This document shows, piece after piece, positions 22,815 through 59,962 of a stretch of 64,000 nt of DNA (the stretch's first letter is position 1; every line of letters starts with the position of its first letter). A model generated the notes under the pieces. The model was not told the origin of the DNA, did not search any database, and was given only the letters and a program-made list of their open reading frames with translations. A program made the position numbers and the translations under genes. The stretch lies in contig OZ281500.1 in the NCBI GenBank assembly GCA_965637545.1, positions 5,022,001 through 5,086,000 of the forward strand, written 5' to 3'. This DNA comes from Phallusia mammillata. Taxonomy: Eukaryota.

Positions 22815-24208
22815 TTAACCGGAACCAGTTATCTGCTGTCTTTGTTGCATTAGGGGTGCAAAAAGTTTTTCCAAGAACTCATCATCAACAACTACACCCA
22901 TCATAATTGCCCTGGAATTGGGCTCAACCCCATAAATTCGTTTCAGCACTAATTTGGCAGCATCTGTTTCAGCTAGCTCTATACTCTCACCAGCGCCTTC
23001 AGTCAAAAACTCTTTTCCAGAATACAAAGCAATGAAAAATACAGGCAATGTTGAGCTTATGCCAGATTGGCGAACAAGCCTAGCTTCAGGTCCTGGTTTG
23101 CCTTGATTCTGCAACTCTTGGGTCAAAATCTTCATTGGGTTCTGTGGTTTCCATATGTCATGCAAAATGTCCTTTCCTATCAGTTGTGGTATAATGAAGT
23201 CCAATATAAACTTTCCAGCAGCAACTGGCCCACCGCTACCCTTGGCAATTGCTTCAATGCTTGCTTGAAATGATTCAGCAAATACTTCACTTGAAGGAGG
23301 AAAGGGACTACATTGTATAAAGTCTTTGTAACCCAAGTTGAAAGCAATGTGGGTCAACTGTTTGGTACTGCACAGATAGTCTAGGATCGCGGATTTTCCC
23401 TCATCACACAGTTTGGGGAAGGATAAGTTAATGTAGTGCTTTACAAATTCATGGATTAAGATATTGCCTTTTGTACACAGACTACTGTAATCAACAACAT
23501 CATCTCTTTCAGGAAGTGGCTGAGTGAATGCTGCTCGAAGATCATCATCAGCAACATCTATTTGAAGGCGCAACCTGGGAAAAATAATAATGTTACAGTG
23601 TCAGGAACTAAATCCTTGAGTGCAGTAGATTTAACAATTTGTTTTAATAATAGTTTCATACTGTGTCTCTCTCACAAACAAGCCTCTCCTATTGCAGAAG
23701 AATTGAAAATAAACTTAATGATAGACTGGCCTCTAACATGCAATCTACTCATGTAAAACATTTAAAAATGTTGATGGTCAGGGTGAGGGTTTGTAATAAC
23801 ATTTTGGGCCAATATTCTTGGGTCTGTGAATAGCCCTAACCAGCAGCATTTTAATAATTTTTTTAGCAGTTAGAATGGATTGCAGGTACCTCTTTTTATG
23901 CAACATGCTGCAGCTTTTCGTCACAAAATTTGAACTTACTTAAATGCAGCAAACTCTGCTTCGTAATTCCAATTTTCTCTCGTAGATCTTGGTTGTTCTG
24001 GTTCCTCTCCTTCTATGTTTTTTTTACGAGCCATGGACAAATACCAATGTTTTTTCCATCTTGCAAACATGATTGAATTTTTGTTAACTGGTTCAAGTTG
24101 AGGATTGCCTGGTTTGGATGTGTATTTTCGTGTACCTTGGGTAGGAGAAGCAAGCATTTGCTTACACAATGGAAATTGCAGCCTTATTATTCGCCGCATG
24201 TTTAACAT
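22815..24208 (-). CDS. MRPL44: Mitochondrial ribosomal protein mL44 (~342 aa, 2 exons)
   Basis: Exon 1 24208-23940 (basic presequence, NWNYEAEFAAF, donor AA|GTAAGT); exon 2 23574-22815 (RNase III-like and dsRBD-like: NPMKILTQEL...PEARLVRQSG...LPVFFIALYSGKEFLTEGAGESIELAETDAAK). Confidence 0.95.
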
Positions 24209-38224: not shown

Positions 38225-38770
38225 ATGGATCTTGAAGACGAATTCTATATCAAGGAAAAATACATTGAAACAGCATCTGGCAACAAAGTTAGTCGACAAT
38301 CTGTCTTGTGCGGCAGCCAAAACATTGTACTAAATGGAAAAACAATCGTCCAATCTGAATGCATTATTCGTGGTGACCTTGCTAATGTAAGAATAGGCAG
38401 AAATTGTGTAATCAGAAAAAGAGCCGTGATCCGACCACCATTCAAGAAGTTCAACAAGGGGGTAGCCTTCTTTCCATGTATGATTGGTGACCATGTTTAT
38501 ATCGATGAAGACTCCATTGTAAATGCTGCACAAGTTGGTTCCTATGTCCACATTGGAAAGGACTGTGTGATTGGAAGAAGATGCATTCTTAAGGATTGCT
38601 CACAGATTGCAGATGGAACTGTTTTGCCTCCAGAGACAGTTGTTCCTCCATTTACACTTTGGGGTGGCTCTCCTGCAACTGTTATTGGTTATCTTCCGGA
38701 GTGCACAAAGTATCTAATGACAGACGCTACAAAACAATATTATGAACATTTTAAACCTGGTCCTGCATAA
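38225..38770 (+). CDS. DCTN5: Dynactin subunit 5 (p25), intronless, 181 aa
   Basis: [29 protein letters not shown]...[11 protein letters not shown]...RPPFKKF.KGVAFFP; near-identical to the human DCTN5 left-handed beta-helix. Confidence 0.98.
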
Positions 38771-45100: not shown

Positions 45101-48100
45101 CTGCTAGCAAACTACTAGGATATCCAGTTATAACTAGGTCTAAGATGTCATCAACAAATGTATTTCCTAAAAACAGAACATTCTATTTTTAAGAATTGGT
45201 AACATCATCTTTCAGATCGGTTTAAACAGACAATTTTGGGTATATCCCACATTTAGTAAAGGAAATAATGCTTTTTGGTGTTCTGAAGAGGTTGTATGGA
45301 TGAAAAGAAAACCAAGCTTTTGTGTATAGTGCTCAACAAACCAGTACTCTATCTTTAAGTAACTTGTGAAACATACCACTACAACGTTGTTATGTATATT
45401 TGTAGGTGTGGTTCATGCAAGCTTGGGTAACAAAACAGGTGCCATCGAAGGATACACTCTTGCAATTTACCACAATCAAAATCATGTGAAAGCACTGTAT
45501 AATTCTGCAGTCATATTGCAGGTACTTTGTTACCAAATTTGAACCACAATAAATTTTAAATCAGTAAGATAATTTCTTTGATTAAAGGACTGTTTGGTCT
45601 ATTTGATGGTTTTTGTCGGCTTATTGTTTACGCCTGTACTGTTCTGCATAAAACTTGGTTTCCAAAAATGCAGGAACTCTATTAAGGTTTTATCGAAAGT
45701 TTTTCTGTTAATTAAAATTTACAGGTAGTGGTTGGATGTATTGTTACAAATACAAACCACTTTTATCCAACTACATACCATCAAATTATCAAGCATAAAA
45801 AAATCACCAAATATGTATATATGTGATTCATCTGTTCTCACAGGAAACAAGGGATAAGGATTTACTTCGCCGTGCCAAAATTCGCATTGAACATGTAATT
45901 AAATTGGAACCAGACAACCTCCTGGCCCAATCTTTGCTAGGGTCAATTCATATGGACTTACATGAATACAAGGATGCAATTAAATGTTGGGATGATGTCC
46001 TAAAGGTAAGTCTTCCTTTCTTTGCAAATAAACTTGTCTTTATTACAAACTGTTTGAACACAACTTATTATAAGTAAACTGCAGACAATACACACTGTTT
46101 CAACCTACCAATTATTATGGTAACAATATATACATATAGCTTTAACTCAGAATGTTAATTTGTTGGACAAAACATCTTCAAACTGGTTTGATACAATTTG
46201 ATGAACTGGTGTATTTAGATTTATTTCAAGCAATTCTTGATACTTCATGTTAGTTGTTTAATTATGTGTGGTTTTTAAACTCCAAACACTCTACTGTACC
46301 AGTCATATTTGTTCCAGCCCAATTCTAAATCAGTTAACTGCATAAAACGTATGGCAACTTGGTTATCAGATCGTCTGCATATTCCAAAATATTTTTTAAT
46401 TTGCAGCAAATGTTTAAGAGGTTATGGTTTATTTCCTTGTCAAAGTTACAATACAATATAGCAAAACCACTCTGTACTGTTTTGCAGGTTGAACCTAAAC
46501 AAAGAATAAGTTTATTCAACAAAGCTCTGCTGCTTTCCCGAATAGGTTTGTACATCTTTTATCGTGTTTTTACATCTTTTATCAATTTTACACATCTTTT
46601 ATCAACTTTTTTAACGAAAAGATTTAAAAGACAGACAAGAAAATACTGATAATAAATCTATATCAACACAACATGCTTTGAACAAACAACGGCTTCATGT
46701 AATTTTTAGAACAGTGGGCAACTATTGACAAATGTTTAACTTATTATTGAAAGAAACTTTTTTCTGCAAATATAAGAAAACATGTTTTCTAAAAACTTTT
46801 ATTTTTAGACAGTAAAAGTGGTACCTGTCTCCTGGCTATAAAGGAATTACTCAAATATTACCCAAACCACATAAAAGGATTGACATTGTATGGTGATGTG
46901 ATGTTAAATGTAGTAAAAGATGTCAAAGAGGCTCTCGCGTAAGTTACTATCATGCAAGCATACAATATGAATGTTAGTTTAGAACAATAAAGTATTTTGT
47001 TTAAAAACTAACAAATGACGGACTTTAACGATAAATTATTGCCTATTTACCAGTGAGGTTATGTTCAGTCTTGAACTGCTTGGCCCACATAATGTTTCAC
47101 CACCGAATAACTATTTTTGGTTTGGCGATTATTTCAGTGCAATTGTGCAGTCGTATCTTACTTAACTTGAGGTAATAATTAATTGTATTGGTGGGTGAAA
47201 TATGAACAAAACAACCTACAATAAGCGAATGTTTTTTGTTTGTTTTTTCATCAAACTTAGCTAAACTTAGCTGGTCAAAGCAGGGGTTTTAAAACACCAA
47301 ATATTATAGACGCAGTTGGTTATTTGCACAGGGATCGTGAAACCGTAGCCCACCACTAGTTGTAAGTCGTCCGCTTAACCCAGCGTTTCTCCATCTTACA
47401 CAGACCGCGGACCGCCTGACAACTTTCTCTTCGCTGCATACCACCTATCATAAACCTTGTTTGAATGGACAGACCTAAAAACATGTCCATTTTCTCGCCC
47501 TGACTAGCATGTTTAATAATTTCAGAAGACTGTACAAGACATGAGTTTCACCCAAACCAGGGCTAATCAGTTGGATCAGTTGAGTTGCAATTTTAGATCG
47601 GTATTGAATTAGGTATCACAGAAAGCTACTCGCGTACCACCTGAAAAGTTCTGGCGTACCCACTAGTGGTACGCGTACCACAGTTGGAAAACCACTGGCT
47701 TAACCGCATGAAATACTTGGCAAACTGCGTATGTGATTAACAGGATTAATGTGCACAAATTCATCACAGTTGTTTTACATCATGAAGTCCAAACATAAAG
47801 ACCAATATGTGTATTGCAATTTGAATGACATTTATGCCTTTCAGTTCTTATGTGCAAACAGAGTCTATCTATTAAACTATTTTTTTAGAATCTTTCAACG
47901 AATTATTGATCTTGAACCTGGAAACACACAAGCAAAACACAATTACTGTGTGGCGCTTGTTGAGGATGGCAGACTGAAAGAAGCCGAAAATTGTCTGGAG
48001 GAGGTTTCAATAGCTGCTCCAGACGAGCCTCACACAAAAGGTGGAGTAATTGATGCGAAAATATGTTCTTTAGTGAAAAAGTTTTCAAGGGAAGGCGACC

Positions 48101-49594
48101 TAAATGGGACGTTATAGCGTTAGTAAAAAACAATACATTTGCCGGAAGAGTTTTTTCAAATATGAAGTTAGGATTAAGTGACAAATTATTGAGGAATAAT
48201 TGTGTTGTTTTTTTAACAACAACAAAAAACCTTGACTTCAACGCAAATTGCGAGAGATTTAGTATGAAATAAGTACTAAATGAAACAAACGAATCAAGAA
48301 AAAAAATAATAGAAGTGTTGGTAAAAAATACGAATAAAGAAGTCTTAGTGATGTTTGGTCAGTTGAAAACTCCTTTAGCAACCTGCTTTCAGCGTTTTGG
48401 CTTGCAGAAAGAAAGAAATTCTTTACTTGAACATTATGTTTGTTTGTTTCATTTTTATCCTCGGTGGGCGGGCAACGCCTGAATTTGTTATGTTCAAATG
48501 AGTTCGCCGTCGAGCTGCCTTTTTTGTCCGTTGAATCATTGTTTATTTGTTTTGTTCGATTTCAAGTTAGTTTAACCCTTCGAGGAACACTGAGTAGGAG
48601 CAATGCCCCTCAAATTCTCGGCCAGTAGTTACCAACATAAAATGTGCGTGTTTTCAGAGAACTTGGCTATAGTGCGACATCGTCTTGCTTTAAAGGAAGT
48701 TCACAATCAACAAGCAAAAGAAGAAGGAGTGTTTGCCAAACAACAGTATGTCGAACATACAGTGCACAAAGACAATGCTGAAGAAACGCATAAGGTGTGG
48801 TTAATTGTGTTGTATCCCATATTCTGCTCAAGGTTGCCAGTTTAAATCCCGTTCTTGTAACAAAAGCCAAAACCCACAACGTTCCCTACAAGTTGCCGGA
48901 CAGGTTGATTTAAATTGTTTTTGTAAATCTTTTAATTAATAAATAAAAGTGGGTAAATCGTACCAAGATGTGGCTGTCCGATTAATTTCCTTGTAAAATA
49001 AAACAGATTAAAGGCAACTATAGTTGTATATATATATCTGTACATATAACTGCATTTTTTACTTTTGGATTCGATTTCTTAAGTTGGAAGTGCCTAACTA
49101 GCATAAGCAGTGACCCGGTCGTGTTTCATGCACATGGTTATCATATACCATCTTTTAAGTGTTGGGTTCTGTTTTAAATGAAAAAAAAACGAAAATATGA
49201 GCCAGATAAAGGACACAATAGCACAAGTGCCCTAATACATTCCAGCAAACTCGGAGTGCCACAACTATTTGTTAGGCGTAACGTGTTTGATATTTTTCCT
49301 AAGGTTGAAGTTGACGAGGAAATCTATATCGCAAAACCCGTTAAGCGAGCAGATGAAACATTGACGGAGCAAGCCGATAAAGTTGTGAAGAATCTTCGTC
49401 GTATGAAAACCGACCAAGTGATGGAGCAAAAACTCGCGCAAGCAAAAAGGGCAGTAGAAAAGCTCAAGCAAATCAAGTCTAAAGCTGATGAACAGACTAA
49501 AGATAAATGTAAAACTGAAGATAAAACAGTCGAAAAATTCGATTTACGAGAAAAAGCTTTAAAAGCGTTAGACGATTTGGAGGCGCAGTTATAA
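39135..49594 (+). CDS. TMTC3: Protein O-mannosyltransferase TMTC3 (TM + TPR), ~20 exons
   Basis: First exon 39135-39317 ([11 protein letters not shown]...NDFWGT), then [39 protein letters not shown]...[56 protein letters not shown] exons ([30 protein letters not shown]), last exon 49304-49594 ([16 protein letters not shown]). [11 protein letters not shown] and the C-terminus point to TMTC3 rather than its paralogs. Confidence 0.93.
42081..42241. mobile_element. Degenerate third copy of the 18755/36235 hAT MITE
   Basis: GTGGTTCTTAACCTTTTT...TTTCAAATCACCAAC...ATCCCCGCAC...GAACCCCTG. Confidence 0.7.
47550..47697 (-). mobile_element. hAT-type MITE end (family of 7491-7600)
   Basis: Reverse strand CAGTGGTTTTCCAACTGTGGTACGCGTACCACTAGTGGGTACGCC...GGTACGCGAGTAGCTTTCT. 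Confidence 0.65.
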
Positions 49595-52040: not shown

Positions 52041-53456
52041 CATACATATCTGGAAAAGAGATGGACACCACCAGGTTCTTTGTCACCTAGCATTCGGTAA
52101 ACTCACCAAAGTGCCAACACGGTCCCAGGATTACGGGAATGACTTGACTTGGACAAGATATCAATGACCTTTTTTGCGTAATTTTTATAGTCTGGAAACT
52201 TAAAGAAACCTCAGCAAATTTATAGAGCTCCTCTGGCAATTGTATTTATATTCCGACGTCGTATGCAGGTCGCCTCATCTGGGTAAATAACACTGAATGA
52301 GCGTAGCACAGTGCACGATAAACAAAGGAAACAATGAATTAAACGCAAGGTGTTACCTGACTAAAAACATCAACCAAAAGTCAGTGAGCCGTTTTCATTT
52401 ATAAGTAGTAGAAATAAGCATGTGTTCCTAATTTAATCGACTATTTCCCACACTGTCACGAGTACGGTTTACTCCATTCGACTTGTCCGGAGCCGAAGTT
52501 AGTACCGAATGCCAACACATTTTATCGATTCAGGAACATACTTTATTTGTGTTTCGGCAATCCACTTAGTTTCCTGGCCATAAAAGATAGCTGGTGGTGA
52601 AAGTGTTTGCAGGGCCTACTCTAGTCTACGTCTTTTCCAAGATCTTTTTAGCGCAACACAAAAATCCTACATGAAAGCTCTATATTCTTTTAAAATGTAG
52701 CTTGACAAAAATACTTATCCTGATAGACCCTGGACTTTTGCCATCTTTTGTAGGGTGCCTCAGTGTCTTACGTGGTTATCTCAAGGGAACCACAAGGCCT
52801 GAAAAGTTACTTTTTGGGAGCACTGTCTATGGAAAATTGAGAACCACTGCATTAAACAGTAAATCAATCTGCATTTTACTGTAAATCTCAATCGCCAACC
52901 GTCTGCCTGGTTTTACTGTGTTTTCTTATTAACGCACAATGCAACATAATTTGACTTTACTTATTTAACACACTTGGCATGTGTTGGTAATTATGGGGGC
53001 TAACGCGTATTTTTAAAATCGTCCCAGGTAACTATCAAATATATTTTGTGAAAAAAGTCGAATTATCCCTCCTTTTCTAGTACCTAACACACAGTGTAAA
53101 ACGTTTTTGTGTAAAAACTACGCAAAAAGTCACGAAAAACAAAACAATAGCGGAGAGATACGCACCAAAGCACTGCTAAGGGCAAAGCTTCGAAAGCCAG
53201 ATTGTACAAACAACACACGAATAATGTGATGAAATCTTCATAATACGTCGAACATCATTGGTGTTGTTGAAAACAGAACATAGTCATAGTATCGCTGTAC
53301 AGTGGTAAGTTATAAGTTACAATTTTTTGCGTGATGAAAAAAAAAAGTAATAGAAAATGGAAAAATATACACACATCTTGTGCAAAGGAGGTCCTGTCTG
53401 GTCAAATACGGGTGCAATTCTATGTTAGCGTGGATGTTCTGGTTGTAAAATTCCAA

Positions 53457-55964
53457 TCACAATATGCAAATATTTTCTTCATTTGTCAGATGAATCTTCA
53501 ACTTTAGAAAAAACTTGAACGCAAAATAATCTTTACACCGCACTCCGTTTGAGCGGAGTAATTCCATATTTTCATCCCACAGCTTTTGAAGAAAACTTTC
53601 TGCTTCTGGCGACCGACCAATCATTGACAAGGATTCAAATTTACATAAAGCAAAGTTGCGAATGTAAAATACATTTTCGTTTTCATTTAATAATTTGCAC
53701 GATTTGTCAAGGAAAACAAGAGCTTCTTTATATCGCTTCAAGCCACACAGACATACACCTCTTCCGAAATATGCCATACGTAACAAATGGTCGGTTTCCT
53801 CATGTAAACGCAATTTACGTCTTTGGGAAATCAATTCTTCATTTACCTCATAAGCATCCTGATAACAACCCAAGCCATAGAGGTACTCACTGTATTCAAG
53901 CATTAGTGCACAACACTCGCTTTCCTTGTTTGTTTTTTTCATTTCGTTGTATGCAATCTTGCAATGTTTCATTATCTCTGCAAGATTGTTCTTGAACATA
54001 TAACACCTTGCCATACATGTGCTAATCTGCAGTTCTGATACAAACATTATCCCATTGGAACGGTAATGTTTTAACTGTTCTGCATCTTTCAGTGCTTCAT
54101 CTTGCTTGTGTAATTCGGTAAGGCACAGGGAGCGTTGCAACAGGTAATAACTTTTCACATTCATTGTCAAATCACTACGTTTAAGTTCTTCTGTACATAC
54201 AGTAACAGACTTTTCATATTCTTTACAGTTGTACAAACTTATTGCCTGCAAAAGCTTTAAAAGCCATAGCTGATTTTGATTACTGACGTCCAGTACATTG
54301 CATTCATCTCTCAGTATTAGAGCAAATCTGAACAGACCTAATTCACATGCCAAAAATGCCGCTTTAACTGGTGAAGTCACAAACTCAATAGTTCTCTGTT
54401 CATCTTGTTCAGTTTCGTTCCTGACATCTTTAAAGCAGTCAATAACATACTTTTGAAGTGATGCAGTGGTATTTAAGCCGTCTACAAGTGCTCTGTTTCC
54501 CATGTGAATGCTTTCCAAACAAGATGGTTTACCAAAAAACTCTATGGGTTGATGCATTATGTCATTTTGACCTGACGTCTTGCAGTACAAGTTCAAACGC
54601 AATTCATACGCAACTGCCACAGAAAACTGTAGTTTATCGTACATAGTCCTGTCCATTATACTACGATCGCTCAACTCATCAAGAATGTCGAAACAAGAAA
54701 AAGCTTTGCATTTACGTAGACGACCCAGAGCTAAAATAAAGAGTGAACCAGTCCTTAATGCAATGCGCTTAATGTCTATTGTAGTTGGTAAAGTCAACGT
54801 CTTCATATTAAACGACTTGTAGTATTGTTTTATATTTCTTTCTAATCTCTCATTCTCCTGACCTATTTTATTAAGCCTTTTTTTCACTTCGTCTTGAAAG
54901 TTTTTATGTACACCATCATCACCGAACAAAAAACAAGTTGTTGTCAACATATCTGCTAAATGATATCCTTGTTTCAAATCCTCATCTCTTTCCAAGTACT
55001 TTACCATCTCACTGACAGGTTTGATTAGCTCAGTTGTCCATGGCTTATTCTGTGTCGTTGTTTGTCTTCCCGGTGGGTTTTTGCTCGCATGAGGAGCAAA
55101 TCCATCAGGAGAAATTCCACATGTAGTGCGTTCGTCATAAAACCAATCTTCTTCCTTGTTTAAGGGATTATTAAGACATGGAATGGCCAAAAAACTTAGC
55201 AAAGTTTCGCCCAGACGAACCAGAATCATTTGGTAAACTGTTGCAAACCATCGGAAATATTCCAAAATCTTTTCGTAATCAGGCTGTTCCTGAATTCCTT
55301 CCTTCAATACTATAATGCTCTCTAAATCAGAATATGGAGTAACCTCTTTTTTAGCCAAAGATCCCGTTCCTGCCAAAGCAAACTTACAGGGTGCTTGCCC
55401 TAATAAGTGAACAGTTTCTTTTGCAATAAATTTCATTATGCTCATGTATGTTTCAGTAACATAAACCTGTATATTTCTCACTTCTTTCACTCTTTTCCTC
55501 CGCATTGCATTAAGTGTTTTGCCATTCAAGTTATCGCACATTGGTTTCAGCTCACTAATTTTTTTATTTGTATTTTCACGAAAATCTTGAATTTCTTTTT
55601 TGATGTCTTTAACAGCTTTACTCACCAACTCTGCATGCGGATTTGCAGCGTTGGCCTCCGTCATGATATGAATGCACACGTTTTCGAGATCTTTTTCAAT
55701 GACATTAACATTTTCAGGCTCCCTTAACACAGCTGATGTCATTAAAGCAACACTTTGAATGAGACTGATCTTATCTGGACTCTTCTCTTTGTACTCGAGT
55801 CCCAACTGATGCAAAGTTTTTGCTGATTCCTTTGGATCTTTTTCCACACCATTGTCATAACATTGTTTATATCTCAACTTATTTGCCAAATCGTTGATGA
55901 CCACGTCTGTTATTATATCGTTCAAGCAATCGTACGAATCTAAGCATGCACACATTTTTAGCAT
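53457..55964 (-). CDS. Intronless 835-aa protein: GlnD/DUF294-like Pol-beta nucleotidyltransferase + helical domain + C-terminal TPR array
   Basis: ATG at 55964, uninterrupted ORF. Motif KFALAGTGSLAKKEVTPYSDLESIIVL (G201-S202, D213-x-E215) fits hG[GS]x9-13Dh[DE]h; candidate third acid D287 (GISPDG); DIKR...LSDRSIM...AYELRLNLY resembles the helical domain following GlnD/GlnE-type NTases; TPR-like helices from about aa 530 (e.g. AYFGRGVCLCGLKRYKEALVFLDKS). Confidence 0.85.
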   Translation of the reverse strand: MLKMCACLDSYDCLNDIITDVVINDLANKLRYKQCYDNGVEKDPKESAKTLHQLGLEYKEKSPDKISLIQSVALMTSAVLREPENVNVIEKDLENVCIHIMTEANAANPHAELVSKAVKDIKKEIQDFRENTNKKISELKPMCDNLNGKTLNAMRRKRVKEVRNIQVYVTETYMSIMKFIAKETVHLLGQAPCKFALAGTGSLAKKEVTPYSDLESIIVLKEGIQEQPDYEKILEYFRWFATVYQMILVRLGETLLSFLAIPCLNNPLNKEEDWFYDERTTCGISPDGFAPHASKNPPGRQTTTQNKPWTTELIKPVSEMVKYLERDEDLKQGYHLADMLTTTCFLFGDDGVHKNFQDEVKKRLNKIGQENERLERNIKQYYKSFNMKTLTLPTTIDIKRIALRTGSLFILALGRLRKCKAFSCFDILDELSDRSIMDRTMYDKLQFSVAVAYELRLNLYCKTSGQNDIMHQPIEFFGKPSCLESIHMGNRALVDGLNTTASLQKYVIDCFKDVRNETEQDEQRTIEFVTSPVKAAFLACELGLFRFALILRDECNVLDVSNQNQLWLLKLLQAISLYNCKEYEKSVTVCTEELKRSDLTMNVKSYYLLQRSLCLTELHKQDEALKDAEQLKHYRSNGIMFVSELQISTCMARCYMFKNNLAEIMKHCKIAYNEMKKTNKESECCALMLEYSEYLYGLGCYQDAYEVNEELISQRRKLRLHEETDHLLRMAYFGRGVCLCGLKRYKEALVFLDKSCKLLNENENVFYIRNFALCKFESLSMIGRSPEAESFLQKLWDENMELLRSNGVRCKDYFAFKFFLKLKIHLTNEENICIL

Positions 55965-58171
55965 TTTAATTTTTTTCCTGTATTAAAATCACAAGCACAT
56001 GTGAACCATTTTATACTGACCAATTTGTTTACCACCTCTTTTTTATTTGTATGTATAAATTTCTTCTATACTATGTCATCTTGATACGTGCTAACTTTTA
56101 ACATTGAACTAAGTAAGATTTGTTCTGCTATACTGTGACATTTTACGATGGCATTAAACGCTCCTTGTAAAAAGTAATGTTTACAATCTTTATCCAACCG
56201 CCTCTTCCTCGTCAGCTATCCCAAATCAAACTCCGTGGAGTTGGGCCAACAAAGGCGGAGGTTTCACCTGATACGCGTCTACATCGCTTCAAGCTTTTTC
56301 TCACAAATTAAAACAATCGCTCTCAAAAGGCGCTTATGTTCTCCCATGAATTCTGGCCATCTGATAGTGTACGAATGTGCTTGTGGCAACACGACTCCAC
56401 AGTGCACACTGAAAGAGCTTTGATTAAAACTTTAAACTGCTATTGTTGCGACAATAACGAGGGTATTTCCGTGTAAATGGGTTATATGTGCATAAATTTT
56501 TTAGAACAGTATTTCGAAATAATTGGGGTTAACAAGGTTTTTGTTCAACAAACAGCGAAATCATGTGTACTGGTTGTAAAAATTACTGATATATGCGGTA
56601 TACCGTTTCGGTTTACGTAAAATGAAACCACGCTAGATACGTTTTTTTTACCTGAGTTAATCTTTGTGCAAATAACTTTAAAGACCTTCAACAAAAGAGA
56701 CATATATACATTGATACTTTTGTCGCATAAAAAGTGTAGTTAATTTGTTAAACAACTTTTAGTCGGTTTCGTAAACCCCGTTCTTAACCGTATAAAAAGG
56801 CAAAAATTACGCTCGTTGAAAAAAAAATAAAAAAAAATATAATGTGTATTTAGCGCACTGGTTTTGCTTAAAATTCTACTGTCTTTCTGAAAACAAAACT
56901 TCATGGCGATAAGATAATTGCAATACATTTTTTTTCTAGCAGCCTAAAACAGTCGAGTGCCAGACGCAGACCTATGCCGTCCCTGTGTCTCTAAGGTCAA
57001 TCGTTGACGTCACATGGTTGCCAGGTAATGACGTGTTGAGGAGGTCGAAGACACTTTTTGAACTCGATTACGTTGCGAAAAACAAAACTTCGCAATGAGT
57101 AACTGTTTTAATGTGCCGGCGCACTTAACATAACAACTAGATCGATATTATTGTTGGAACTGAAATTGCGTAATTATTTTTTATACTCATAAATGTCCTT
57201 GATGTAACTTAAATGTTAACCGAACGTCAGGTGTCAATTTTTACAACATGTAGCCACAGCATCTTTTTTGTATGGCTCGCAAAAGGACGTTACAGTTAAA
57301 ATAACATCGCGTACCAAAAACACAGACCAAACGTAATATAATACCAGAGGTTTTTTCCCACGCCTCGCGGCCCCATTGTGTGAAAAAATTTTGTCAAATC
57401 CACGACTTCTTTTAAAACGTTTAAGGTTACCGGCTAAACACACAAACAACGTGCGGAGGTTTGTGTGCCTGCCTCGCAACACAAAGGCTGATAAAAGTGT
57501 TGGAAGTACCGTTGTTGTGCTTTTGTGTTTTAACCTGTTGAAACTAAACTACAGTGATGGAATGTTAATACACCAATTGACCATGCTTCGAAAGTTCGAC
57601 AAAACTTGGTGACACATCCCCAACTGGTAACAATGACAGACTTGTTCCAATTCGCAAGGGTACTCGAAAAAAACTTTGTAATGACATACAGAGGTTACAA
57701 AGGACGCAAACCTCGTTTTGTAATATGAAACTGTCTAATTTTAGATTTCGTAAAATGTTCATTTGTTTTCATGTTTTTGGGGACAGGCTTTTTTGGGATT
57801 TTGTTCTCGCACATGCAAATCATAAAATGCAATTGGTTTCCGTTAAAATTCATGCGGGCTACGCTTGATGTTGTGCAAACTACTTGTGTGTTGTTCATCG
57901 CATGTAACTTGGAATTATTTGATTGAGCTGTATCAGACCCTCTATAACAGGCAACATAATCATCGACGATCACTGTCTTTTTCAAGTATAACTTTAAATA
58001 TGAAAAAAGGTTTCCAAAGAAGCAGAATCAGTCGATAATACTTAATAAAATATATATTTCGCCCATTGACATCGTCAGTTTTTGTAAAACCATGGGTTAA
58101 AACAACAGTAAAATGAAGATAAATCAAGAATAAGATAAAACCAACGACATAGAACCTACACCACTTCACAG

Positions 58172-59060: not shown

Positions 59061-59265
59061 CTAAGCAACTGTAATGTTAAGCAAAGTGGTATCCAACTTT
59101 AAAGCCTTTGCCAAACCTAAAATGTGCAAACATACATCATCAAGATCTTTGCTGATAGCATCTGCATTGTCAGGCTGCTTTTCTTAACTTATTTGCTAAC
59201 TCGTTAAGTGTTACTTCTGTTATTATATCATTTAAGCAGTCGTACGATTCTTTACATGTCGACAT
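59061..59265 (-). pseudogene. Internally deleted 5' remnant of a paralog of the 53457-55964 gene
   Basis: MSTCKESYDCLNDIITEVTLNELANKLRK vs MCACLDSYDCLNDIITDVVINDLANKLRYK; then, in another frame, QPDNADAISKDLDDVCLHILGLAKA vs EPENVNVIEKDLENVCIHIMTEANA; ends in a stop. Confidence 0.88.
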
Positions 59266-59962
59266 TTTAGCGTTGTGTCTGCAACAAAACCGTTTAACAA
59301 AATTACTCGAAAATTGCGATTGTCTAGTAGCCTACTTAAGAATGTTTATAACTAAATGAACACCAAAAAGGCTAATATGCTTTCACTTTTCAACTCAAAA
59401 AGGACCTATCAGTTTGACCACAAGCAGTTGTAGTGTTGTTGCCTTTTTGACGCAACTGTTTGTAAAGTGTTTTAATGAATGTCTAATAAAACGGACATTA
59501 ATGTGTTTACATTACCAATTTGCACGTTTTGTTTGTTATTGGAAGGACTCGCGAATAATACCACAGTTCTACCCTGAGCTGTTTGCTAATAACAGTTCTA
59601 TGAAAGCATTCTTAGAAAAATTCATCTTGGCTATTTTGGTTTATTAAATCATCTCCACATTTTGTCTACTTCTTGGGAAACGAATAAAAAACGTTCGAAT
59701 TTTACCTGACAACGTAAAGTGACGGTTGGTTAACTTTAAAAACTAGTCTCTTTACAGCGTCGTGTGTTTGGTTACAATACATACTACTAATCATAGTAGT
59801 ATCCGGTTACGATTTCACACTACGATTCACAGAACGACCAAGCAACATACATATAAAGTTTCAAACCAACCGGTGCGCAATGTGTTTTTATTTCCTGAAT
59901 TAGATTTGAGTTTGGCTGCAGTTCCATTCGGTCACCATCAACCTTTACCAAAATCCTTCTCG

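Follow-up and report, generated by a model that had tools for sequence, protein, structure and literature searches.

An intron-free gene of Phallusia mammillata joining a predicted DrrA/GlnE-type nucleotidyltransferase to a TPR array, from a tandemly amplified tunicate family

Several nucleotidyltransferases (NTases) act on proteins: GlnE modifies glutamine synthetase, GlnD modifies PII and DrrA modifies Rab1. A sensor-plus-NTase logic is known as well from cGAS and OAS. In a 2025 review of AMPylation, the transfer of adenosine monophosphate (AMP), the eukaryotic AMPylases are FICD and SelO only, and the adenylyltransferase type is treated as bacterial, by way of GlnE and SidM/DrrA (PMC12409994). 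The NEX2 proteins of Neochlamydia have an F-box-DUF294-TPR (tetratricopeptide repeat) architecture and form a 50-member family (PMC4209131); that paper and general domain surveys were all that our literature search returned, and no study of an animal NTase-TPR family was found. We describe here an NTase-TPR gene from the tunicate Phallusia mammillata, located within a stretch of 64,000 nucleotides (assembly GCA_965637545.1, contig OZ281500.1, positions 5,022,001 to 5,086,000 of the forward strand), hereafter the window, whose numbering we use throughout. Its sequence and predicted fold let us assign it to its family and fold with high confidence. By analogy with GlnE, GlnD and DrrA, its product is rather likely to be an active protein NMPylase, in other words a TPR-guided enzyme that transfers a nucleoside monophosphate (NMP), probably AMP, to proteins.

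The gene is a complete single-exon coding sequence on the minus strand (53457-55964), as a preliminary description made from the letters of the sequence had correctly noted, and runs from ATG to TGA over 835 codons without interruption. The listing of open reading frames (ORFs), the match of the genome to itself and two DNA runs (X2 and X3) all support it. It is by far the longest ORF of the 64-kb window, the runner-up reaching 252 amino acids, so that in DNA of 37% GC it cannot have arisen by chance. A search of the whole genome (240 Mb, 312 contigs) returned it at 100% identity, with 841 codons open in one frame. The two DNA runs come from a different study than the likely source of the assembly. 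Over 90% of the gene's sampled words are present in each of them, their contigs cross the stop codon into the flank (52709-54959) with zero differences, and their depth is even over the gene, both flanks and intergenic DNA. The locus is thus not a misassembled contaminant, a danger that had been raised beforehand, and the gene is genuine chromosomal DNA of the animal. Its GC is host-like (0.37-0.38 around the gene, in a window ranging from 0.32 to 0.40). A recent bacterial transfer, a contaminant or the cargo of a mobile element would account for a gene that is intron-free, of a bacterial enzyme type and present in many copies, but we find it hardly credible, first because of this host-like GC and the even depth of independent runs, and further because of the evidence on flanks and ancestry given below.

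The enzyme half, residues 71-519 (54408-55754, minus strand), is a GlnE/DrrA-type adenylyltransferase module by its fold matches and by Pfam DUF294. In the predicted structure, leading helices precede a Pol-beta NTase core, and a helical, KNTase_C/HEPN-like domain for substrate binding makes up the C-terminal part of the module. AlphaFold2 modelled the whole protein, from 80 homologs, with a mean predicted local distance difference test score (pLDDT) of 88.2 and a predicted template modelling score (pTM) of 0.88; a second model, of residues 60-525, reached 88.6 and 0.91. Foldseek on the whole-protein model ranked Legionella DrrA first, with E. coli GlnE after it, and VIA-align superposed the whole model on DrrA (6yx5_B) with a Z of 22.6 for 323 of 339 residues, over the model range 71-519. 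We also compared the model of residues 60-525 exhaustively with 48,161 representative chains of the PDB, and listed the 50 best (Z of 4.4 or more). The best was again DrrA/SidM (Z 27.4, 323 of 339 residues, root mean square deviation 3.7 Å), together with the N-terminal (1v4a, Z 22.0) and C-terminal (3k7d, Z 20.5) domains of GlnE. After these, Z falls to about 8, among aminoglycoside nucleotidyltransferases and HEPN domains; HEPN and KNTase_C chains match the domain at about 310-460 of the model at Z 6-8.

Sequence comparison agrees with the fold. The catalytic motif G201-S202-X10-D213-X-E215 (55320-55364, minus strand), aligned to DrrA, has the form G-X11-[D/E]-X-[D/E] by which the SidM/DrrA motif is defined (PMC12409994). 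The four residues named in this motif and D287 (55104-55106, minus strand), all of which the preliminary description had picked out, are invariant in an alignment of 47 tunicate, amphioxus and bacterial or metagenomic sequences with 25 invariant columns in all; its invariance and its putative active-site position make D287 the candidate third metal-binding carboxylate. A tunicate-type alignment of 80 sequences shows no variation at G201, E215 or D287 and a conservation of at least 90% at S202 and D213. Among tunicate homologs, 89 columns reach a conservation of 90% or more, and the copy in the window has the consensus residue at 80 of them; in the cross-kingdom alignment it does so at 44 of 45, and its catalytic residues are all intact. 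Pfam recognises DUF294 (PF03445) at residues 154-252 (26.5 bits, gathering score 21), a family precomputed for most homologs too, and a weak match to SidM_N. The whole protein found nothing useful in the PDB by sequence; a profile of the enzyme half built from the 47 tunicate, amphioxus and bacterial sequences had DrrA as its sole significant match there (E 2.9e-4), and laid the family's GSLA....T.YSD.E onto DrrA GSLAKAQATEYSDLD, the G-X11-D-X-D catalytic motif. Ahead of the module, residues 1-70 (55755-55964, minus strand) form a helical hairpin (AlphaFold2 helices 11-34 and 44-59) that lies outside the part aligned with DrrA; it is kept among the tunicate paralogs, with E41 invariant.

The preliminary description had left open whether such an enzyme would nucleotidylate proteins or synthesise a nucleotide signal. 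The drop of Z from 20-27 for DrrA and GlnE to about 8 favours the former. A second-messenger or oligonucleotide synthase like cGAS, OAS or the CD-NTases, gated by ligand binding to the TPR array, might be expected from a Pol-beta NTase core with the common GS...D-x-[DE] signature and from the way in which cGAS and OAS couple sensor and NTase. No cGAS, OAS or CD-NTase chain, however, is among the 50 best of the 48,161 for residues 60-525, and the Pfam scan of the protein matched neither Mab-21 nor OAS. The DrrA/GlnE matches, moreover, take in the entire module with its helical substrate-binding domain, and the motif resembles that of DrrA in its sequence context. We therefore judge a synthase of this kind very improbable.

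The same Pfam scan detected no HD, ACT, CBS, cNMP or Cache domain, no F-box or OTU, and no NACHT, NB-ARC or other P-loop domain, and the NTase module and the TPR array cover the entire length of the protein. Databases automatically name members of the family 'Protein-PII uridylyltransferase N-terminal domain-containing protein'. This is a domain label only: the NCBIfam models of GlnD score far below their cut-offs (NF001265, 24.8 bits against 799; NF002895, 11.1 against 631) and touch about 45 residues. The PADLOC defence models gave a 16-bit, chance-level match only, and thus do not connect the protein with any known anti-phage system.

The variable half of the protein, residues 528-835 (53460-54383, minus strand), is predicted to form 15 helices, or about 8 repeats, that wind into a TPR-like superhelix. 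In the whole model it aligns over 292 residues with the TPR domain of LGN (4wnd_A, Z 22.7), and further TPR matches are NprR and Rap (Z 20-21) and KLC1 (Z 18.8), so that the predicted fold is that of a TPR superhelix of the peptide-binding LGN/Rap/KLC kind. Pfam TPR models reach only sub-threshold scores near the C-terminus (TPR_12, 21.1 bits against a cut-off of 30.1). The helical domain and the 300 or so residues of TPR-like helices read from the sequence in the preliminary description are thus both present in the AlphaFold2 model, and the joining of a GlnD/DUF294-like Pol-beta NTase to TPRs was confirmed by Pfam, AlphaFold2 and Foldseek. With the register of the A and B helices set from the conserved Y..A(L) signature of the B helices, the A helices are more variable than the adjoining B helices throughout the array (mean column entropy 1.87 versus 1.27 bits in 12 paralogs, Mann-Whitney test, p = 9e-9), and likewise in the alignment of 80 sequences (p = 0.0015). 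Since the concave groove in which TPR structures bind their ligands is lined by the A helices, variation is concentrated where partners bind.

The gene belongs to a family with at least 55 loci in its own genome, in keeping with the lineage expansion that had been proposed; a first look gave 146 candidates, and 55 is therefore a lower bound. No internal stop is found in 42 of the 55 loci and 13 hold stops, others being partial; most span nearly the whole query in one open frame of 850-1180 codons. They lie mostly on one chromosome-scale contig, the window's own, in same-strand tandem runs at about 2.31-2.47, 3.18-3.23, 4.71-4.77 and 5.07-5.13 Mb, and the gene described here starts the last of these. 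Three kilobases upstream of it, at 59064-59268 (minus strand), lies a relic of another family member that has lost its interior, retaining residues 3-31 and about 76-118. In tblastn searches it was matched by three paralogs (E 1e-7 to 6e-8), and it shows an 87-nt direct repeat with 77% identity. It demonstrates directly that genes die within the array.

Divergence within the family, analysed in 12 full-length paralogs, is unevenly distributed along the protein. Mean pairwise identity is 78% for residues 1-145, 80% for residues 146-350 (the NTase core), 57% for residues 351-520 (the helical domain) and 41% for residues 521-835 (the TPR part). The ratio of nonsynonymous to synonymous divergence (dN/dS, Nei-Gojobori method) ranges from 0.14 to 0.33 for the NTase core and from 0.25 to 0.77 for the TPR part; between the window copy and three paralogs it is 0.26-0.33 and 0.54-0.57, respectively. 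We thus have a tandemly amplified birth-and-death family, in which the catalytic half stays constant and the groove-lining A helices diversify. For several pairs, dS is 2-5 times lower in the first 350 or so codons than in the TPR half (for instance, 0.20-0.49 versus 1.0-1.4 between the paralogs L002 and L003), and the depth of the DNA runs rises to about 40 times the base level at 55620-55810. The low dS and the raised depth point to gene conversion or to very strong constraint on the enzyme half; judging from the low dS, gene conversion may be what homogenises this half.

The flanks of the gene are compatible with the same history. Part of the 5' flank (55986-56343, minus strand) is common to three paralog loci, with 68-79% identity in a blastn search of the flanks against 11 paralog loci. 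Such a resemblance over about 350 nt fits segmental tandem duplication, and the segment is a candidate shared promoter or 5' untranslated region. In the motif scan, TATAAA was found 51 nt upstream of the ATG (55965-56015, minus strand). The same region contains ...TTTTAATACAG/G 13 nt upstream of the ATG, which could be a splice or trans-splice acceptor. Repeats bracketing the gene were looked for, terminal repeats included, and none was found, and the similarity of the flanks to those of paralogs is patchy. The idea of a mobile element was rejected on both grounds. Nor do the flanks show a high copy number in the DNA runs, with the exception of a distinct short repeat about 1.1 kb off. In the two DNA runs the depth over this element (52182-52372, 3' of the stop) is about 190-fold the base level, which marks it as a high-copy repeat. 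The same runs contain a contig joint from 53044 to 52216 with 26 extra letters, which may represent a structural variant of the 3' flank. The lack of bracketing repeats and of high-copy flanks, and the arrangement of the copies in same-strand tandem arrays, likewise argue against mobile cargo or a recent arrival.

The best named homologs of the protein are those of Ciona intestinalis and Clavelina lepadiformis. With the enzyme region of a Holosporaceae protein as query we obtained 514 matches, and among the 120 matches listed nearly all were from Branchiostoma (33-38% identity). The family is therefore very large in amphioxus too, and the patchy occurrence in invertebrates suggested in the preliminary description is borne out by Ciona, Clavelina and Branchiostoma. 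Three Branchiostoma models (P0156, P0157 and P0159) are very long (1500-2500 amino acids), with two NTase modules split by TPR arrays, and are probably neighbouring tandem genes joined by the gene predictor. A metagenome contig with one homolog looks eukaryotic, its one long ORF lying amid short spurious ones, and such 'metagenome' homologs are probably animal DNA.

Among bacteria and archaea, a pattern scan of 185,579 genomes gave one confirmed relative, the Holosporaceae bacterium 'Namur'. In its genome of 1.9 Mb, at least 12 giant ORFs combine an NTase with TPR_12/TPR_10 arrays, and one of them has an F-box; a single close relative among 40 sampled neighbours shows a similar expansion, and the others do not. 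On one Holosporaceae contig (L040 of genome G001, C3, 1044-13618) the NTase-TPR gene stands among packed same-strand giant ORFs and adjoins an ankyrin and RickCE-like (deubiquitinase-type) gene, which fits a Rickettsiales-type bacterium. On another Holosporaceae contig the neighbours had no family match and transfer RNAs were not found. This context, with an F-box in one of the genes, concerns the Holosporaceae loci L040 and L027 (313-4581), and a bacterial-like metagenomic relative (P0174) has a sub-threshold match to the Ulp1 protease at its N-terminus (19.5 bits, cut-off 20.7). The bacterial context looks like that of effectors directed at host ubiquitin-type pathways. An Atlas cluster of DUF294-TPR proteins is mostly from Chlamydiota. 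By sequence, the nearest non-animal relatives of the family are the NTase-TPR proteins of intracellular bacteria (Holosporaceae and Chlamydiota). The window protein and its bacterial relatives are only 20-25% identical, which is again difficult to reconcile with a recent transfer. That DUF294-like NTases joined to TPRs occur in intracellular bacteria had been suggested in the preliminary description, and proves right in Neochlamydia (NEX2, PMC4209131), in the Holosporaceae genomes G001 and G002 and in the Chlamydiota cluster. Another Atlas cluster, of short (about 290 amino acids) DUF294 proteins, is mostly from Ciliophora. Ciliophora are hosts of Holosporaceae, and this cluster may bear on the route of a transfer.

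A tree of the enzyme module (82 sequences, quick IQ-TREE analysis, LG+C20 model) places all tunicate sequences in one clade with a long stem (support 100). Within it, the 12 paralogs of our genome form a clade of their own (100), in which the window copy is sister to the other eleven, with 64% identity to the nearest of them in the NTase module. One clade (97) contains 24 of the 25 Branchiostoma sequences, and tunicates and Branchiostoma group together (SH-like approximate likelihood ratio test, SH-aLRT, 94), with the bacterial and metagenomic sequences falling outside this group. The tree is rooted on one canonical DUF294 protein, whose branch measures nearly 6 substitutions per site. With the root hanging on this one very long outgroup branch, the apparent nesting of the chordates within bacteria is weak evidence for the direction of any transfer. 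The wider superfamily is overwhelmingly bacterial. The animal family is old enough for two chordate subphyla to have it in common. A deep tunicate clade that includes Ciona, Clavelina and our genome, with amphioxus as its neighbour, excludes a recent transfer from bacteria, and an old horizontal origin is plausible. The preliminary description had likewise concluded, from the host-like composition, that any transfer would be old.

How might such a protein work? It would be a cytosolic protein of two parts, an enzyme half (71-519) and a binding half (528-835). By analogy with GlnE, GlnD and DrrA, the enzyme half would move AMP or another NMP from a nucleoside triphosphate to a hydroxyl side chain of a target protein, and the TPR groove would bind the target or an activating ligand and so set the specificity. 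The family as a whole would then be a repertoire of enzymes with many differing binding specificities, which the constant catalytic half and the diversifying groove helices fit. A repertoire of this pattern would be expected for functions in defence, in self/non-self recognition or in other conflicts. Tandem amplification, pseudogenes, species-specific clades and the focus of divergence on the groove all suggest a conflict or immune role, which, coming from family dynamics only, we put forward as a tentative possibility.

The copies might instead be housekeeping or regulatory AMPylases or deAMPylases that tune proteostasis or trafficking, as FICD does, without any role in conflict. The N-terminal domain of GlnE, of the same fold, removes AMP, so that the direction of the reaction of the window protein, too, is read from likeness; and this deadenylylating domain matches our model as well as the transferase domain does (Z 22.0 versus 20.5). 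FICD also pairs TPRs with an AMPylase domain (PMC12409994), and dN/dS is below 1 everywhere. Yet housekeeping enzymes rarely reach 55 or more tandem loci accompanied by pseudogenes and relics, and rarely form species-specific clades, and the divergence of the groove helices suggests changing partners; we consider a housekeeping function unlikely. One might speculate, with a little less assurance than for a conflict role as such, that the family is a third class of animal AMPylase, found in invertebrate chordates: a DrrA/GlnE-type enzyme with a diversified TPR groove, forming a large germline repertoire of sensor-enzymes that tag proteins of microbial or non-self origin, or tag host proteins upon binding a ligand of that kind, and sharing its ancestry with effector families of intracellular bacteria.

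Several observations weigh against a TPR-guided NMPylase with diversified specificities at this locus. The dN/dS of the TPR half is below 1 and positive selection is not demonstrated. The window copy departs from the consensus at nine conserved columns, including L298P, Y403L and C453Y, and its C-terminus is 100-150 amino acids shorter than that of most paralogs. Neither AATAAA nor ATTAAA was found in the motif scan within about 750 nt past the stop. No transcript of the window copy was found: the runs recorded as RNA do not contain the gene, and two runs guessed to be RNA contain only pieces of 30-120 nt at 55709-55835, whose mismatches and diverging ends make them look like paralog transcripts or paralog DNA. 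The C-termini of the paralogs were searched for downstream of the stop, and the missing repeats have left no remnant there; the copy is therefore simply shorter, and the idea of a premature stop was rejected.

These features raise the question of whether the window copy is silent or decaying, an open yet unexpressed member of a birth-and-death family. The lack of RNA support, the shortened C-terminus, the nine departures, the absence of a canonical poly(A) hexamer within 750 nt, the stops in 13 of 55 genome matches, with others partial, and the relic next door would all be explained in this way. Against it, the 835 codons are still open although the copy branches earliest of the 12 paralogs, every catalytic residue is intact, and the dN/dS of its enzyme part versus the paralogs is 0.26-0.33, a pairwise value that reflects the lineage of the partner too. 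A silent copy is in our estimation improbable, somewhat more so than a housekeeping one. Overall, then, the preliminary interpretation of a TPR-gated NTase with a possible immune function is partly supported: protein nucleotidylation stands as the favoured activity, and a cGAS/OAS-like synthase finds no support in the fold search.

Our results suggest that dozens to hundreds of genes for a third, adenylyltransferase type of enzyme are present in tunicates and amphioxus, each fused to TPRs of which the groove helices change fastest. If active, these enzymes would (i) constitute a new class in animal post-translational signalling, (ii) offer a tractable system for studying the coupling between a repertoire of binding specificities and an effector that makes covalent modifications and (iii) pose the question of gene flow between animals and intracellular bacteria that have the same architecture in effector-like proteins. 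The yield of the window locus alone is more modest, namely a single family member that is intact, somewhat divergent and short at its C-terminus.

Other genes of the window give some context. A complete gene for dynactin subunit 5 (DCTN5) lies at 38225-38770 on the plus strand in one ORF of 181 codons (Pfam PF21711, 308 bits, positions 1-178 of the 182 of the profile). The preliminary description had presented the single exon of the NTase-TPR gene as unusual among the mostly spliced genes of the window; the gene is indeed intron-free, but it is not unique, since DCTN5 has a single exon as well. Separate short ORFs at 45823-46077 and 47749-48117 (plus strand) match TPRs and are parts of a spliced plus-strand TPR gene, which is consistent with TMTC3. 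A 252-codon exon at 22815-23573 (minus strand) codes for the endonuclease and double-stranded RNA-binding domains of MRPL44.

Compared with systems already described, the window protein differs from STAND/NLR-like receptors in having no NACHT or NB-ARC nucleoside triphosphatase. With bacterial DUF294 proteins and GlnD it has in common the Pfam family and a predicted fold that superposes at a template modelling score of about 0.6. The bacterial DUF294 proteins (PF03445 with PF10335), however, usually carry CBS, cNMP-binding or Cache sensors, whereas in the window protein, which has none of these, the putative sensor part is a TPR array placed after the enzyme; from GlnD it differs by scores far under the equivalog level and by the lack of HD and ACT domains. 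It resembles E. coli GlnE (1v4a, 3k7d) in the fold of the NTase core and helical domain, with about 315-320 residues aligned at 10-12% identity, but GlnE has two such modules, is controlled by PII and is without TPRs, and the window protein has one module. FICD/HYPE is likewise an animal protein that pairs TPRs with an AMP-transferring domain (PMC12409994), and its logic may be analogous; the Fic fold, however, is unrelated to the Pol-beta NTase, and FICD is a single-copy, membrane-anchored protein of the endoplasmic reticulum in which the TPRs precede the enzyme. NEX2 and the Holosporaceae paralogs have the same order of an NTase followed by a TPR_12/TPR_10-type array, and are amplified within their genomes. 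These bacterial proteins are larger (1200-2200 amino acids), many with F-box, ankyrin or Ulp1-like parts, and the N-terminal F-box (or OTU) that precedes the NTase in NEX2-type proteins is absent from the window protein. The best structural match over the whole module is the N-terminal domain of Legionella pneumophila DrrA/SidM (6yx5, 3nku), at about 15% identity. Both proteins place a G-X11-D-X-[D/E] motif within GSLA....T.YSD.[DE], and in both the same helical domain comes after it. Beyond this module, DrrA, a secreted bacterial effector, goes on to a Rab guanine nucleotide exchange factor and a phosphatidylinositol 4-phosphate-binding domain, whereas the window protein, whose gene lies on an animal chromosome, goes on to a TPR array.

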